A DNA stretch of 64,000 nucleotides, from NCBI GenBank assembly GCA_038496445.1, contig JALMLS010000009.1, positions 1 to 64,000 on the forward strand. Reading direction: 5' to 3'. Source of the DNA: Trichosphaerium sp. ATCC 40318 (lineage: Eukaryota > Protista > Tubulinea). Within the stretch, counting starts at the first letter, position 1, and each line of letters opens with the position of its first letter. The notes beneath the pieces are model-generated. The model worked only from the letters and a program-made list of their open reading frames with translations. It was not told the DNA's origin and did not search any database. A program made the translations under genes and the position numbers. Positions 6,544 through 53,212 of this stretch are shown one piece after another.

Positions 6544-9074
6544 ATGTTCGCAAGACTAGCATCACGAAGCACACAGGTATGTATGTATTATACTTGCTCA
6601 AACTCAATGAGTTTATCTATTAGATTTCCGCACGCGCTACAGCTCCAGCTGTCTCTAAAAAGAGCTACGCTACTGTACAAGATGAATCTGTACGTTTGAC
6701 AAGTTGTCGTAAAAATTAAACTCTGGTGTAGGGTCTCAAAGAGCGAGTCCGCGCTTTGATCCCAGAAAAGACTGCAGAGATCGTTGAGCTTCGTAAACAG
6801 GTCGGCAGCACTGTCATTGGACAATGTACCGTTGATCAAGTAAGATCCCCTTTTAGTGATTTAAACACGTTCTCACACTAATAAATAGGCATACGGTGGT
6901 ATGCGCGGTGTTAAGAGCATGGTTTCAGATATTTCTCTACTTGACGCTGAAGAGGTGCGGAAAAATAATCACGGACACATAAATTATGCCTAGAGAATAT
7001 TTCAAAGCACTTTCCAAAACATTCGTCATGTTATTGCTTTTCATTATCTTACGAGTTTTTAGGGTATCCGATTCCGTGGCTTGTCCATTCCACAATGCCA
7101 AGAGCAACTCCCAAAGGCTGCGGGTACGTTGTAGTCTTTTAGCCGTTAGAAAACCCTTCAAGGCAGTTTATGATGCACAACAAGCCACTAGAGTGCTACT
7201 ACTATTTATGGTGGTACACTATGACGGAGGCGCAGGGGCGCTGATTAGCCACTTAGCATGAAAAAGCATATTTTATGTAAATGGTTTAAAAAGTCTTACT
7301 TTATCTCAAGGCGGTAAGGAACCACTCCCAGAAGCTTTGACTTGGCTCCTTCTCACAGGCGAGGTATGTTTTATCATTTTCTCTGTTGGTTCCCAACTTT
7401 AAGCGTAAGGGTCTGCAATTTAGTTCTCACAATGCGCTTTAGGTCCCAACAGTTGATCAAACTAAGGCTGTAACCGCTGAATTGAACAAACGTGCTGGTC
7501 TTCCAGAGCACGTCACCAACATGCTCAAAGCATTCCCAAAGGACTTGCACCCAATGAGCCAATTTTCTGCTGGTGTTTTGGGTACGTATTGACGAGAACG
7601 CCAGGAAATCCTGTTTTTCGAAGACAAAATGCTGACGTTTTCAACTAGCCTTGCAAAGAGACAGTTTGTTCGCAAAGGCATACCAAGACGGTGTCCGCAA
7701 GAGCGAATACTGGGATTCCACTTTTGAAGATTCCCTTAACTTGATCGCCAAGCTCCCAGAGCTCAGCGCAACCATCTACAGGTAAAGAGCCACAAACGTT
7801 CGTCTTTATTGAATACACATTTACTCTTCCGTTTAGAAACGTATACAAAGACGGTGTTGTAGCTCCAGTTGATCCAAACCTTGATTACTCCGCAAACTAC
7901 GCTAGGTAAACTTTTCTTTTGATTTATTTCATTTTATCGGTTTTTTTTGTATCATCTCTAATACGTTTTCAGACAACTCGGTTTCAACGACCCTACCATT
8001 GATGACTTGCTCCGTTTGTACTTGGTTATTCACAGCGACCACGAAGCTGGTAACGTCAGGTAAGATTTCTCCTTCTTTTATTTTTGTAATTTTCACTGTA
8101 GTGCCCACACAACCCACTTGGTCGGTTCTGCTCTTTCTGATCCATACCTCGCATTCTCTGCTGGTCTTAACGGACTCGCTGGACCACTTCACGGTCTTGC
8201 TAACCAAGAGGTATTAAAACCAACCTTATTTACCTACAAAGAACTTACCGATTATTCAAGGTCCTCTCATGGCTCAACGGTGTCCAAAAGGAACTCAACG
8301 GTGCTGAACCAACTAACGAGAACATCTACCAAGCTATCAAGAATACTCGTGACTCAGGTCGTGTTGTTCCTGGATTTGGTCATGCTGTACTCAGGTAAAA
8401 ATGGAAACCCTATCCACAAAAATCAAAAACTGAAAACTTTTCCGAATTTTTTTATTTTTTACTTTTTTCTCACTTGCACTCACTTACATGAACTTTAGAA
8501 AGACTGATCCTCGTTACACTGCTCAACGTGAGTTTGCTTTGAAACATATGGCTGGTACGTATTTATTTGAGAATACTGCAGAAAAGTTTTTTCTAAACTG
8601 ATTATCACAGATGATCCATTGTTCAAATTGGTATCAAAGGTTTACGAAGTTGCTCCTGATGCTCTCACCAAGCTCAGCCGCACCAAAAACCCATACCCTA
8701 ACGTAGACGCCCACAGGTACGAGTTGTTATCTTCATTGATCGCTTTTTGAATCGATTGAAAGATGAAATAGTTTTCTCAAGTTTTATTACTTTAATCTAA
8801 TCGTTTTCGTTAGCGGATGCTTGTTGATGCACTACGGTATCACTGAGCAAAACTTCTACACAGTTATGTTTGGAGTATCCAGGTACGGCTTGAAAAAACG
8901 CTTGCTTATGTGAAAAGCACTGCGATGCGTCAACTATAACTCAACTAACCATCTCCCTTTAGAGCTTTGGGTGTCCTCTCCAACCAAGTTTGGAGCCGCG
9001 CTTTCTCTATGCCTATCGAAAGACCAAAATCAGTCACCACTGAATGGATCAAAAACAACGTCAAGGCCCAATAA
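6544..9074 (+). CDS. CS: Mitochondrial citrate synthase (about 16 exons)
   Basis: Presequence MFARLASRS; [65 protein letters not shown] and FGVSRALG motifs. Confidence 0.97.
7162..7250 (+). ncRNA. Intronic box C/D snoRNA, predicted guide for U6 snRNA Cm62 (SNORD94-like target)
   Basis: Lies in the 187-nt intron 7124-7310. Box C-like ATGATGC 7170-7176, box D CTGA 7241-7244, guide GCGCAGGGGC 7230-7239 (reverse complement of U6 GCCCCUGCGC), C'-like ATGACGG, short GGC/GCC terminal stem. Confidence 0.75.
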
Positions 9075-34504: not shown

Positions 34505-37500
34505 ATGTCACAGCAACAACTGAAGCGGGTCTTTGAAGGCCCTGAGCCTGTTGGTTATGTTGCTGGTTTGGGTCGTGGGTACGTTCTAACACTATAATTA
34601 CGCATAAAGAGTGCGTTACGATAGTTATAATGTAACTCTTATTAGTGCGACTGGATTCACCACTCGATCAGATATTGGCCCAGCTAGACGAGCGCAAATT
34701 ATACGTGAAGCTCAAACGTTCATGGGGTACTAATTTTTAAATCATTGATCAAAAACAATTATTCTCGTACTAAATCCGTTTAGACCACCAGGAACAGCGC
34801 CACCAGCGCAAGGATCACAGTATGTCACCTTTATTTAATTCTCTAAAACAAACCGTTTTCTATGCCATCTCACTTTCTTGTAGATTTGGAGTTGCTCCTG
34901 CAGGTTACAGACCAGGTATTGGCCGTGGTGCAGGTGGATTTGGCGACAGCCAAATGGCTATGTCAGAGGGAGGACTAGGAGACGGCGCACCAAACTTAGG
35001 CGAAGGAGACACTGGGTTGTTCGCTAATCTGAAGTATGATAAAGATGATGACGAAGCAGATGAGTACGTTTTGTTCAGTTTCCTTAACGTTGCCTTTTGA
35101 AACTACTAGCCTTGTTTATAGTAATAATGATGAATAGTATATGGTCTATGATAGATAAGAAGATGGATCAAAGAAGGAAAAGACGTCGTGAAGAGCGTGA
35201 ACAGAGAGAGTTAGCAGAGTACAGAAAAGAAAGACCAAAAATATCAGCTCAGTTTGCGGATGCCACAAAAGAGTTAAAGAACGTTACCTATGAGGAATGG
35301 GAAGCTATTCCTGAAATTGGTGATCGTAGTGCTAGGTCCGTGAGTACATAAACAAAATAAGAGATTTTGACATGTCCTGAAAATGTCAAGTGTCAAAGTT
35401 GTTTTTTCTCTAAAATTAAAAGGTTCGCTTTCTTACTTGTTAATAGGACCAAGAAGCAAAAATTAGATCGCACAACACCAATGCCTGATGGAGTACTTTT
35501 GCGTCAGATACAATCTCAAGGCGTTCACTCTTCTTTGGATAATAGACAGATGGGTGGAGGATGGACACCAAGTACGTGAACATTTTGTTTTCACATAACA
35601 CAAAATGCCCAAAAATACTTTGAGTATTTATTTTTTTATAGACGGGTTCGTTACTCCATCAGGTGGAATGCAAACACCTTGGGGTGGTAGAAGTTCTGTT
35701 GTACCTACACCAGGTACTTCGGCTGATTTAACACAGTTCGGAAATGCCAGAAAGTCATTGCTTAGTACGTCTTGGTTTTTTTTGTTATTTTTGTTTCTTT
35801 TTTTTCTCGCTTTGTTTGGATTAAATACTTATATCTTACACCCTAGGTTCAAGACTTACATCTGCATCTGATTCAGTAACTGGACAATCTAATGTTAATC
35901 CATTGGGTTACTTAACTGACTTGAATCAACACAGCAAAGGAAGGAGTGAGGCTGAAATTGGTGATATAAAGAAAGCCACCGTGCTATTGAGCGGTCTTCG
36001 TAGAACAAACAAAACGTATGTGGAGTCATTTGCAATAGCTAATTTTTATTTGTATTTCACGTGTTGCTCTTCAAATTATTTTTTTACTTATTGTGTCCTT
36101 TAGACACAGTCGTGGATGGATAGCTTCTGCTAGGTTAGAAGTTGCTGCAGGAAAGATAACTAAAGCGAGAAAAACTATTATGGAGGGTACAAAGTATTGT
36201 GCACGTAATGAGGATATTTGGCTAGAAGCTGCACGTCTTCACCCACCTAAAGATGCTAAAACAATTCTTGCAAGAGGCGCTCAAAACATACCAACAAGGT
36301 ACCTTTTTTTCCTCTGTTGTTTTCTTTCTATTTTCATTGAAGTTTTTGGAAGACTTTAGATAACTGTTCTTCTTCACTTTATTATTACTGGTAGACTGCA
36401 TACTTACTTATTTTTATAGTTATAGGATATGGATCGCAGCGTCTAAGCTTGAAACAGACCCTAAAAGAAGAAAGACAGTACTTCGTAAAGCATTGTTGAA
36501 TATATCAAACTCTGCCATTCTATGGAAGGCTGCCATAGAGCTAGAAGAGCCTGAAGATGCAAAAATTATGTTATTGAGAGCTACAGAATGCGTTGAAGAT
36601 GATGTAGACTTATGGCTTGCTCTAGCGAGACTTTCTTCTTATGAGAACGCCAAAAAAGTTTTGAATCGAGCTATCAGAAAATTACCAGCAGAAAAGAGGA
36701 TTTGGATTGCAGCTGCTCAGCTTCAAGAGGCAAATGATAATTTAGGACTAGTTGGTGATATTATTACACGTGCTGTTGAGGCACTTGCTACACATAACAT
36801 TAATATAAGTCGTGTTGATTGGTTAAAAACTGCTGAAGTTTGTGAAAAAGAAGGAAGTATTGATACTTGTCAGACTATTGTAATGAAAACGATTGCTCTT
36901 GGATTAGAAAAAGAAGATCAAAAACGAACATGGATAGAAGATGCTGAAATGTGTATTGCTAGACGATCAATTTGTACAGCAAGGTAAGACTATTTTGGGG
37001 TTACTTTTTTTTTAAGTCACTGTCCATTTGTTTTTTGTAGTTTTTCTTACTTTATTCTTAGAGCTATTTATGCATATGCCACCTCTGTGTACAACAAAAA
37101 AAAGTCTCTTTGGTTGCGTATGGCTGATTTAGAACGTCAAGAAGGTTGCAAGGATAAATTGATAAGTGTACGAACAGCAATGCGCTTATGTTTGTTTCGC
37201 TTCTAACCTTTTTTTATAGGTATTACAAACTGCTGTAGAAAATTGCCCTGGCGCCGATATTCTTTGGCTTATGCTTGCAAAAGAACAATGGCTTGGTGGG
37301 GATATTACAGCAGCTCTTGAAACACTAAAGAATGCGTTTAAAGCTATCCCAACTTGTGAAGAGATTTGGCTTGCTGCAGTAAAACTTGAGAAAGAAACTG
37401 GTCGTTTCGATAAAGCAAGGCTAGTACTTACGAACGCACGTAAACAAGCAAACTCAAAACGTGTTTGGATGAAGTCAGCTATGCTGGAGAGATCTCTCAA

Positions 37501-38859
37501 GAATTATGAAGAAGAAGGAAACCTCCTTGACGAGGTACGGCTGGTCAATTGATTTTTTTTATTACCAAACTTTTTTTGCGGAATGATGATAACATCCATC
37601 CTTGCTCGGAAAATACTTTTTGTATTCCATGTGGACGTCTAAGGGGAAGGGTTTATCGTGCCCTTCCTGACCGCTATTTTTTAAAATAACGCCAAAGCCT
37701 CTTCTAGTTAGTGTTGAGTTTTCTGAAACTGACCTTCAACTTACTAGGGTATCAGAAATTTTCCTCGTTTTCCGAAGTTGTGGATGATGCGTGGTCAATT
37801 ATGGGAAACGCTTGGTGACAAAGAGAAAGCAAGAGCAGCATATCAAAGAGGATTGAAACTAAATGCTCACTCAGTTGCTCTATGGCTATGTGCAAGCCGT
37901 CTCGAGTTTACTATGTATGGCGCTGCAAAGGTACAGTTTTGTTCTCTTTTTTTTGCACGTGACTTCATTCTTTTAAAACTCGGTGCTTAAAATTAGTTCT
38001 TTAACTTGTTGAAGTACTATATAGTTGTCTTATGACATGACTACTGGTGTTATATTGTTATTTTCTAATGAGTTTTTTTAGACTCGTGCTTTGCTTGAAA
38101 AAGCGAGACTTCATAATAGAAAAAATGCTCGTCTTTGGCTTGAATCTGTGCGTGTTGAAATTAAGAGCAGTGATAACAAGAACGTGGCTACAAGTGTTCT
38201 CGCTAAAGCGTTACATGATTGCCCTACAAGTGGTATTCTTTGGGCAGAGCGTATAAGACTTGAGAAGGCACCACAGAAACGTGCTAGGTCCTTTGATGCA
38301 CTTAAAAAGTGTGATCAAGATCCTTATGTCATGTTGGAAGTAGCAAAGTACGTACATAGTTTTTTATCTTTAATGCAATTGTACAACATGGAGAACATTT
38401 ATTTGTTTTATGAAAGTATTACTTTGAAGTTTTCTAGTTGTTTTTTAGAACACGTGTTATTTTATTTGAATGATTAGACTTGTGTTTTTTTTGAAATGTA
38501 CTGATGCTTTTTGGTTTAGGTTGTTTTGGAAAGATAGAAAGATCAACAAAGCACGTACTTGGTTCAATCGCGTTATCAACAGACAACCAGATTTTGGTGA
38601 TGCTTGGGCAACTTATTATAGATTTGAGGTTCAGCACGGTACAGAGGTATGCAACAAAGGGAAATCCATTGTGGTGTAAAAAAAAAAGTGTTTGTCTCAT
38701 TTTTCTATTTAGGAGCAAAGAGAAGCGCTAAAGAAAAAGTGTATTGATGCTGATCCACGCCATGGAGAATTATGGATAAATATATCAAAATCTATTGAAA
38801 ATGAAGCACTAAAACCTGGACAATTACTATTAAAGGTTGCTGCCAGTATTAGGATGTAA
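34505..38859 (+). CDS. PRPF6: Pre-mRNA splicing factor PRP6 (U4/U6.U5 tri-snRNP, HAT repeats)
   Basis: [60 protein letters not shown] and DPRHGELW motifs. Confidence 0.97.
37578..37674 (+). ncRNA. Intronic box C/D snoRNA, predicted guide for U6 snRNA Am70
   Basis: Lies in the 213-nt PRP6 intron 37535-37747. Terminal stem GCGG/CCGC, perfect box C ATGATGA 37583-37589, guide CATCCTTGC 37597-37605 (complement of U6 GCAAGGAUG), D' CGGA, C'-like ATGTGGA, box D CTGA 37667-37670. Confidence 0.85.
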
Positions 38860-39519
38860 AAAAAAAACTTGGTAAAATAAATAACATCTTGGTGTCAAAA
38901 AACGTCAACAATTGGTCGCAAAGTGGTTTTCTGCATACGCCAAACACATGTTTGAAAACACTACAATGTATTTGTTGTCATTGAGGCTAAGGCGGGCTAA
39001 AACTCGCAGGAGAAAGCATTCTCTTAGAAACCATCAAACGCTTGTTTATACTATGTTAGCTTTTCTACACCTAGCCACGTTTGAGACTGAAGTTGATATC
39101 CAAATTTTGAATACGGTGAAACTCAGCTAGGAAGACTAAGTCGCTATACATACACAACAAGATGCAGAGAAATTTACCCAAAAGGATCAGCACTAAATAC
39201 CTTTCTGCAACTGAAAGACTTTTCAATGCTAGGTGGCAAACAACAGTATGTACTGGCCTCGGACCTAAGCAAAAAAAAAGATCATAAACGGTCCAATGGA
39301 CCAAAATCAAAGGGAGTAAGTACCCTTGAGATCTGAAAAAAAAGATCCAAAAAACATTGATTGTCATTGAACTTGTAATTCGATTGAATCAAGAGTAACA
39401 GTTGTACAACGTTTGTTTGAATAATAGTATAAATATGCTAATGTATAGCCAAGTGCTAAGGAAGTTGTACATTATCTATGGCGTGTTTGTTCAAAATAAA
39501 TTGACACTCAGTGATTGTT

Positions 39520-50221: not shown

Positions 50222-53212
50222 ATGGAGATCATGATGGATACGAAAATTCCGTTGAAGAGAAAACCCGCGCACCTCTCAACGCCCGAGGAAACGCGTGCGG
50301 CCAAGAGGAGAAAAACTACCAACTCTTCTAGTTTTTCTGGGGATCTAAAGTTGCATTTACCCCAAAACCCAAACAACACGCAAAACCACAATCACGTTAA
50401 TGGGAGTCTTTCAACAGCGAAGAACGGAAAAATAAACGACGTAGAAGGCTTTTTGGTTAAACTTTTGTCATCTCGTTGCGATACAAAACCGAGCGCTTCG
50501 CCGTCCAGCGGTGATAAAACGCACTTCAAGGAAGAATCGACAACTATGAATGGTTCTAAACTGGCTGATAGCAAAAGCGTTGGAGAAGTTTCGGACCTTC
50601 ACTTTCTTAATGCGCTCGAGAAAAAGCTCTACGTACATCGTTGCCAGCAGTCTACAGGCACGTAATCTTCCATAAGCGGGAAAATACGCAACGTGTTATT
50701 TTAAAAATAAGCCTTACAAATTGCTAATTCGTTGTAGTTATGGGCTTAGACGCAGGATTGTACGGTGTAGATAGTCTGCAAGATATGAAAGTGGGCCTGT
50801 ACATTAATTTACATCGCTGCATGTTTACCATCAATTCTTCGGTACTTTCACTTCCTCCCAATGCTATCATAACACTTTTAAGCCTACTACTTACAAATAC
50901 GACCATCACGTTATGAGATGCATTTCACGATCGATTGATCTTGGTGTTCTCGTCCCAGATCTTGCAGCAATGCTAGAGGACGTCCAATGCCCATTTTACG
51001 AAGGTTCGCTATTTAACCGTTCTTTTTTGTTTTCTTTCTTTAAAAATTAATATTCCTCTCAGGGTGTGTATTGCTTGAAGTACGTGACTACCGTAATCAA
51101 GTGTCCTCTGGGTTTCAACCAACATGTCATCGCGTGTTATTACGTCCTACTCAAGAAACACTCGCTGGTGACTTAGAGCGTATGATGACGCAAAATAAGC
51201 TTGATCTAACTGACGATGAAAAAATTCTTTTTGAGAAAAAACTATTGGTGCGGAAACAGTTAATTTCTTTTGTCAAATTCTGATTGTTTTTTTTTTTCAG
51301 GAAAAATTGAGCCCTCCTGTATGTTTAGAGGTTTCCAAGTCATTAGATGAATGTCGTGTGCTTTATGGACTATCTTACAATATTAATAAATACAACTACA
51401 GGCCAAGACGAGGTACATTTGATTGACTTTTTGGATTTTTTTTTTGATGGATTTTCAATAGGTTTATTGGGTCGTAAGAGTAGAGTGCTTCCTACTAGGA
51501 AGCCAGTTCGCAAAAGGCAGTCTAATCTATACTCATTCCTCAAGAAGCATTGCCGTAGCAACAAAGATATGTATTCCATTCACAATCCAGAGTTTCATAA
51601 AGAACAAGTCAGACACTGCAATCACCCACTACTATCTACCGCTAGTAGGGAAAGTCGTCAAGCAAACCTTCCTCCTGAGAAACAAGAGAACTTTAAGACA
51701 CCGGATATCAATAGTATGCACAAAGAGAATTTTTTAAAGTACTTCAGCTAATCCTTTTTTTTTTAAGTCATGTCGCATCCAATTGTTCCAAGCGGTATAC
51801 CTCGACCTGAGCCATTCATAAAAGACAGGTTAATGATGTATAAAATTCATAGAGATGCCCGAAAGAGCCGTCAGCATTTGCAGCGTGCTAACTATCATGG
51901 TACGTTTTTTTCTTCAGTAAAGCAATATTGGATTTCGCGACTAATTCAAAGTAGAAGTTGTCAGAGTTGAGATTAAAGAGACTAGTCCTGGTATATTCAC
52001 CGGTCTAGTGCGTGTTAATGTCACACCTGCGGGTGGCGCTCGTCAAACTCTCAGTGGGTGAGTAGTATTTTTCTCTTTTTGGTTCAACAATTGATTTTTT
52101 TTCTAAGGCCTCCTATTGTATTTGGTATTGGATCTGCAAGTGCTGTACGCACTTATATTAAAAACTTGTACCTCCTTGAAAAAGACAACCTTCTTATGGA
52201 TAACGCTGTTGTGCTTGATCCTAATCGTAAACGAAGTACGTAGTACATTGTTATGCTTATTAAAATATTCTAATGAAGATTTTAAAGGCATAAGTGTTCG
52301 TAAAAGTCAAGAGTTACATCACCGATACGGCGCGACTGGAAGAGTACGTTTTCTCTTTTTTTTTTTTTTGTTGCTTTCAGACACTTTCTTGGGCTGTCAA
52401 GTTCTTATTGTTGTTAATAGAGTTATGGCTCGTATTCTGCGCAAAATGGACGCGTCCCTATTGGATTCCCAGGATATAACCAAACACGTAAGAACTTTGG
52501 TAGGAAAGTCAGTGGCTAATATATTTTCTCTAGGTTATGCACGTACAGCTTTAACTACAGCGCAAATGAATCCGAGTACCAGAGCTGCTGCCATTGAGCA
52601 TAATAGGCGCTTACAATTGTTACGTGCTCAACAACAACAACAGCAAGCCAAAGGGATCCCAGTTAAACCTGGACCTCATCCTCCTCCTAATCGCTCTACT
52701 TTCTTGCCAAATGGTCATCCAATGTACGAAGTTAATTTTTTCTTTATCTTCTAAAAGCTAATTTCCTCTCAAAGTCCAAGACGCACCAACAGGCACCCAG
52801 GTATGATTAACATGGGCGGTGCTAATGCTGCTACAATGCAGCAGCTCCAAAATGGCGCTACTCGTGGTCCAACAACTAGTAGACCAACCACACGAGGGCA
52901 TAATCCAACGTAAGTCACTGAGCAATATTTTGCGTACCCCACCACTACCAAAAGATTTCCTTTTTCTAATGGATACGGCCATACAACCATGAAAACTCCG
53001 TGTCTCTTTCCGAACCGCGAAGATAAGCATGGTATGGCCCTGCCAGTACTTGGGTCCGTGAGGACCAGGGAACGTAGGGTGCTGTATTCATTTTGCTTTT
53101 TTTTCTTTTCGAATTACAGTAGCATGCTTGCGTGTGGTCCTGTGCCTTTGTGTATGTGATACTGACGTATTTTTTGCTTAGGTCAAAACGAGGAATGAAT
53201 CCTAAACAGTAG
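50222..53212 (+). CDS. SPT20: SAGA complex subunit SPT20-like protein with Q/P-rich tail
   Basis: FYEGCVLLEVRDYR and HRVLLRPTQETLAGDL..FEKKLL..PPVCLE match the Spt20 SEP-domain pattern. Confidence 0.8.

Follow-up and report, generated by a model that had tools for sequence, protein, structure and literature searches.

The longest intron of PRP6 in this amoeba raises the question of whether it encodes a box C/D snoRNA directed at the U6 snRNA, and whether the presence of such an RNA in the gene of a tri-snRNP protein has any function. The locus was studied in the window, which is the whole 64-kb stretch of DNA that was analysed, and the coordinates of the features are collected in Table 1.

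Table 1. Positions of the features in and around the snoRNA-bearing intron of PRP6, and of a second candidate elsewhere in the window
Feature	Position	Strand	Description
PRP6 host gene	34505..38859	+	about 15 short introns; pre-mRNA-processing factor 6, U4/U6.U5 tri-snRNP protein
U6-like stretch CGCAAGGATCACAG	34807-34820	+	last nucleotides of PRP6 exon 3, abutting the GUAUGU 5' splice site
Host intron	37535..37747	+	213 nt, GT..AG, GTACGG...CTTACTAG; longest in PRP6
Candidate box C/D snoRNA	37578..37674	+	97 nt; sense to PRP6, inside the 213-nt intron
Terminal stem 5' arm GCGG	37578..37581	+	pairs with 37671-37674
C box AUGAUGA (AAUGAUGA)	37583..37589	+	perfect RUGAUGA
D'-side antisense element CCAUCCUUGCU	37596..37606	+	37597-37605 Watson-Crick complementary to U6 GCAAGGAUG
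D'-like box CGGA	37607..37610	+	one change from CUGA; putative assignment; aligned to CUGC in the ceN47 consensus
Hairpin between D' and C'	37608..37628	+	GGAAAAUAC / GUAUUCC, 7 pairs, 2-nt bulge; MFE and centroid folds
C'-like box AUGUGGA	37629..37635	+	two changes from RUGAUGA; degenerate, putative assignment
3'-half hairpin, 7-9 bp	37644..37668	+	GGGAAGGGU / GCCCUUCCU; last two nt overlap the D box; MFE and centroid folds
D box CUGA	37667..37670	+	perfect consensus
Terminal stem 3' arm CCGC	37671..37674	+	immediately 3' of the D box
Probable branch site CUGAC (A37732)	37729..37733	+	putative; 58 nt past the snoRNA 3' end
Second intronic C/D-like candidate	7162-7250	+	within a citrate-synthase-like gene; citrate-synthase-type motif in the downstream ORF

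The start codon of the host gene was read from the sequence as the ATG at 34505 and the stop codon as 38857-38859. The translated exon 36421-36981 was found to match residues 399-559 of human Prp6 (E 3e-64) and also yeast Prp6 (E 2e-15) in a PDB sequence search, and the product was found to contain TPR/HAT-type repeats (Pfam). By the likeness of its product, the host gene is PRP6. Logan contigs from four public runs were aligned to 35000-39200, and all four were found to be spliced transcript assemblies, which contained eleven GT..AG joints of PRP6 in this region. An exact skip of 213 nt, from 37534 to 37748, was present in the contigs of two runs (X1 and X2) that are labelled as two different organisms. 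Runs X2-X4 represent sister organisms, with an exon identity of about 99%. The other ten confirmed introns were found to be 52-172 nt long with a median of 82 nt, so that the snoRNA-bearing intron is 2.6 times the median, and each of the few 5' introns that were without transcript support (34505-35336) was found by inspection to be shorter than 100 nt. Because of the eleven confirmed lengths and the short inspected 5' introns, the 213-nt intron is the longest in PRP6, as the initial annotation had described it, and the spliced contigs of the two runs together with the lengths of the remaining introns uphold that description. A T-rich low-complexity run at 35780-35817, which lies in another PRP6 intron, was found to draw hundreds of unrelated contigs with less than 95% likeness from runs X2 and X3. 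This pile-up is a mapping artefact and not expression.

The remaining PRP6 introns were found to carry, 10-20 nt upstream of the AG, motifs of the CUUAC/CUAAC type, and on this basis the CUGAC of the snoRNA-bearing intron was read as the probable branch site. The distance from the 3' end of the candidate to the 3' splice site was 73 nt. In mammals, Hirose and Steitz are said to have found in 2001 that a spacing of 70-80 nt is optimal for the splicing-coupled processing of box C/D snoRNAs, and the spacing in the amoeba was counted in favour of the snoRNA reading because it lies within this reported optimum.

The candidate was found to contain the full layout GCGG-A-AUGAUGA-UAACAU-CCAUCCUUGCU-CGGA-(hairpin)-AUGUGGA-(spacer and hairpin)-CUGA-CCGC, in which the two arms of the terminal stem form 4 bp. 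The 5' arm of the stem is followed by the nucleotides A37582, A37583, and U37584, which leave exactly three nucleotides before the G.A pairs and would form the bulge of a kink-turn, followed by the possible pairs G37585.A37670, A37586.G37669, U37587.U37668, and G37588-C37667. The class of box C/D RNAs is recognised by an RUGAUGA near the 5' end, a CUGA near the 3' end, a terminal stem of 4-5 bp, and kink-turn geometry, and all of these were found in 37578-37674. Members of the class accumulate as stable RNAs of about 60-150 nt in complex with fibrillarin, Nop56/58, and Snu13. The C/D'/C'/D layout with a 4-bp terminal stem, which had been proposed at the outset, was recovered element by element, with putative D' and C' boxes. 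Degenerate internal C' and D' boxes are common in box C/D snoRNAs. A guide upstream of the D box was considered and discarded, with the region tied up in the 7-9 bp hairpin at 37644-37668. The 3' half of the candidate, as judged by the predicted folds, probably holds no free second guide, and since this hairpin occupies the position of a D-side guide, the candidate was read as a single-guide snoRNA. The fold z-score of the candidate was found to be -2.2.

The layout was compared with the expectation from chance by a strict scan of both strands of the 64-kb window, in which an RTGATGA had to be followed 40-160 nt later by a CTGA and the sequences flanking the two boxes had to form 4 or more Watson-Crick pairs. 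The segment 37578-37674 was found to be the sole match on either strand, against a mean of 0.07 matches in first-order Markov-shuffled windows. A search that tolerated one mismatch still found the 12-mer CCATCCTTGCTC of the guide region at a single place in the window, with 0.15 occurrences expected. The layout is taken to be beyond chance because of the sole match of the scan and the single occurrence of the 12-mer, each set against its expected number.

The guide region was found to contain, 6 nt past the C box, the 12-mer CCAUCCUUGCUC (the guide followed by C37607), which is the guide of the SNORD23 and ceN47 consensuses of Rfam. The consensus of SNORD23 reads UGAUGAcAC-CAUCCUUGCUC and that of ceN47 reads AUGAAGAAAUAcCAUCCUUGCUCUGC, whereas the amoeba candidate reads AUGAUGAUAACAUCCAUCCUUGCUCGGA, and in all three the 12-mer stands soon after the C box. 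The guide is followed by the presence of a box that is one change off CUGA, which is CUGC in ceN47 and CGGA in the candidate.

The target segment used for pairing was U6 CGCAAGGAUGACACGCAAAU, which is implied by the published primer for mouse U6 (PMC11863803) and is not the amoeba's own U6. Against this mouse-derived segment, the nucleotides 37597-37605 were found to form nine perfect Watson-Crick pairs with GCAAGGAUG. The duplex of the guide with the mouse-derived segment (CGCAAGGAUGACAC) was found to have an energy of -16.2 kcal/mol over 9 bp, and 0 of 2000 shuffled guides were as good. A pairing of 9 bp is at the short end of the range for guides, and the duplex is short because the guide nucleotides on either side are unpaired with the U6 segment. 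When CGGA is taken as the D' box, the fifth upstream nucleotide is U37602, which stands opposite the second A of CAAGG in the mouse-derived U6. This second A is A70 when counted on the full human U6 sequence. Guides of this class should carry, immediately before D or D', an antisense element no shorter than 9-10 nt whose fifth position faces the target nucleotide, and on the mouse U6 segment 9 Watson-Crick pairs were found with U37602 facing A70. The earlier placement of the methyl group by the +5 rule on the A70 equivalent is therefore reproduced, with CGGA as the D' box and with the mouse-derived segment as the target. The U6 of this amoeba is assumed to carry the target, given the conservation of U6; no U6 gene was found in a viral-contig scan, in the 64-kb window, or in the fetched metagenome loci.

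The site itself has a documented history. Human U6 carries eight 2'-O-methyl (Nm) sites, A70 included (PMC8599867), and Am70 lies within the internal stem-loop, where it acts with Cm62 and Cm63 to promote the installation of m2G72 (PMC13109388). SNORD23, which was an orphan for years, was positioned with its D' box at U6-Am70 by chimeric eCLIP, with a high RiboMeth-seq score, whereas a different U6 site had been proposed for it by an earlier study (PMC11863803). In S. pombe, the deletion of sno530 abolishes Am64 of U6, which is the equivalent site (PMC10484740). What the initial annotation had stated of A70 methylation, of sno530 and Am64, and of SNORD23 agrees with these reports (PMC8599867, PMC10484740, PMC11863803).

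The candidate was also compared with the known families. The whole window, searched at the gathering thresholds of Rfam, was found to contain nothing but a 5S rRNA, and no snoRNA family was found. The 5S rRNA gene lies at 52971-53090 on the forward strand and matches over its full length with 93.7 bits. In E-value mode, the intron was found to give sub-threshold matches to SNORD23, ceN47, SNORD116, and snoZ122, which were used to read the consensus guides. The match to SNORD23 (RF00603) scored 15.7 bits (E 0.3 on 109 nt) against a gathering cut-off of 64 bits, in a low-score alignment that mis-registers the C box, and the match to ceN47 (RF01637) scored 12 bits (E 3.3 on 301 nt) against a cut-off of 35 bits. 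Because these scores lie below the Rfam thresholds, the candidate was filed under the box C/D guides of U6 and not under a named family.

Like the candidate, SNORD23 is a box C/D RNA that is encoded in an intron and contains CCAUCCUUGCUC a few nucleotides past the C box. However, nothing aligns beyond the boxes and the guide, the 3' half is different, and the spacer between the C box and the guide is 6 nt in the candidate and about 2 nt in SNORD23. The host gene of vertebrate SNORD23 is not known to be a splicing gene. The consensus of ceN47, AUGAAGA-AAUAc-CAUCCUUGCU-CUGC, was found to contain the same guide followed by a D'-like box at the same place as in the candidate, whereas its length is about 155 nt compared with 97 nt. 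The box C/D guides mgU6-47/snoZ30, mgU6-53, mgU6-77, and U94 also act on this Pol III snRNA, at other positions of U6. The fission-yeast sno530 (SPNCRNA.530) guides A64 of U6, the counterpart of the site that is predicted for the candidate (PMC10484740). It contains an imperfect C box and no terminal hairpin flanking the C and D boxes (PMC10484740), whereas the candidate is canonical in its architecture.

Relatives of the host gene and of the guide were searched for more widely. When the 187-aa exon was used as the query of a word search, no close relative was found, only distant PRP6 fragments with at best 56% identity, and an exact look-up of the ORF adjoining the intron gave no record. A metagenome scan with the pattern TGATGA-N(2-9)-CCATCCTTGCTC returned 120 loci, which were mostly bacterial coding sequence matched by chance. 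The loci that resemble C/D RNAs were L064/L085/L086/L087, L115, L075, and perhaps L012. The group L064 (274-440), L085, L086 (1933-2100), and L087 was found to contain a C box followed by CCATCCTTGCTC, a D box, and the terminal stem GAGCCC/GGGCTC, and the locus L115 (2870-3000) was found to contain the same module with the terminal stem CAGTCC/GGACTG; the stems in these five loci are 6-8 bp. The locus L075 was nematode-like and L012 contained a canonical CTGA as its D' box. Among these C/D-like loci, none reached a gathering score of Rfam and none was found beside PRP6-like exons. Judged by their layout, they show that the module of C box and guide recurs in apparent C/D scaffolds of unrelated eukaryotes.

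The evidence has to be weighed against two other readings of the RNA. The intron may hold a real box C/D snoRNA for which U6 A70 is not the substrate, or not the only one, so that its short guide would be directed at rRNA or some other RNA, or its RNP would serve as a chaperone and methylate nothing. This would agree with a pairing of only 9 bp, with the non-canonical D' box, and with the history of SNORD23, which was long an orphan and was given a different U6 site by an earlier study (PMC11863803). Against it stand the identity of the 12-nt guide with two families from distant animals and the position +5, which coincides with an Nm site already on record; that a 9-mer should line up in this register by chance with any of the roughly 140 Nm sites known has a probability of about 5e-4 by our own estimate. 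A different substrate is for these counts considered unlikely, although some weight was left to it. The other reading is that short motifs have clustered by chance in a long intron from which no stable RNA arises. All transcript contigs are spliced and none covers the intron, no family of Rfam was found at the gathering score, and the fold z-score of -2.2 is modest, as this reading would have it. But chance would yield 0.07 such scaffolds per window even before the guide is considered, the identity of the 12-mer at the correct offset is expected at about 1e-6 per scaffold, and the intron is enlarged by roughly the size of the insert, and a chance cluster is regarded as quite improbable.

The best explanation, which we hold to be likely on the strength of the boxes, the guide, and the host intron, is that 37578-37674 is an intron-encoded box C/D snoRNA gene guiding the 2'-O-methylation of the A70 equivalent of U6. 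The RNA, which would be roughly 97 nt long and reside in the nucleolus (or the Cajal body), would be transcribed within the PRP6 pre-mRNA. The 4-bp stem would bring its C and D boxes together in a kink-turn, to which Snu13, Nop56/Nop58, and fibrillarin would bind during splicing, followed by debranching and by exonuclease trimming of the intron down to the protein-protected stem; the general route by which intronic snoRNAs are made is described elsewhere (PMC4696412). The 9-nt element CAUCCUUGC upstream of the D'-like box would then pair with GCAAGGAUG in the region of the U6 internal stem-loop, and fibrillarin would methylate the 2'-OH of the adenosine opposite the fifth guide nucleotide, which is the equivalent of human A70 and of S. 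pombe A64. The candidate would be a functional counterpart of SNORD23, ceN47, and sno530, and possibly an ancient orthologue of them.

The remaining part of the question is whether the host matters. It had been proposed that the supply of U6 modification is tied to the splicing of the transcript for the tri-snRNP bridging protein, possibly with pairing of the guide to exon 3. Such a function would fit the presence of guide and host in one pathway and the known cis effects of snoRNAs on host splicing, for example those of SNORD2 (PMC11028025). It would also draw on the stretch CGCAAGGATCACAG at 34807-34820, which resembles the U6 stem-loop segment with 12 of 14 nucleotides identical and offers 8 bp to the guide of the snoRNA. 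However, a U6-like stretch of this kind was found in 20 of 100 shuffles, the expected number for one window is 0.24, and the stretch at 34807-34820 is for this reason probably a chance occurrence.

A further count against a function of the host is the second candidate of the same window (Table 1), which lies in an intron of the citrate-synthase-like gene. It was found to contain an imperfect C box ATGATGC and a D box CTGA preceded by GCGCAGGGGC, and in Rfam it gave only a weak match to TtnuCD20 with 13.8 bits. The element GCGCAGGGGC is complementary to nucleotides 59-68 of human U6 and would predict Cm62 as the target of a U94-like guide. The choice of host looks arbitrary because this U6-directed candidate lies in a metabolic gene. 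In addition, no fetched metagenome homologue was found in PRP6, and in the literature no precedent and no paper reporting a snoRNA hosted by PRPF6 was found. A functional role of PRP6 as the host is thus very doubtful, and the spliceosome co-regulation loop of the initial annotation was left unsupported by the citrate-synthase-hosted candidate, the homologues elsewhere than beside PRP6, and the literature. That guide and PRP6 would form a unit, in which splicing-dependent output and pairing with 34807-34820 let U6 maturation and PRP6 expression feed back on each other, is to be rated as highly improbable. It is not surprising that one of several snRNA guides should lie in one of many splicing-factor genes, and most likely PRP6 hosts the RNA incidentally, being a housekeeping gene that is well expressed and offers an intron of a suitable kind. 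The hosting is a curiosity, which would gain weight only through conservation in sister species.

The mechanism by which the candidate would act is already known, and the amoeba is probably a new lineage for it. SNORD23 was tied to U6-A70 as late as 2025. If the candidate is confirmed, the group of U6-A70 guides, which contains SNORD23 in vertebrates, ceN47 in nematodes, and sno530 in fission yeast, would be extended to an amoeba, and the atypical guide of fission yeast would gain a canonical-looking counterpart. The methylation of this site in the catalytic stem-loop of U6, together with a dedicated C/D guide for it, would then predate the split of animals and fungi from the amoebozoans.
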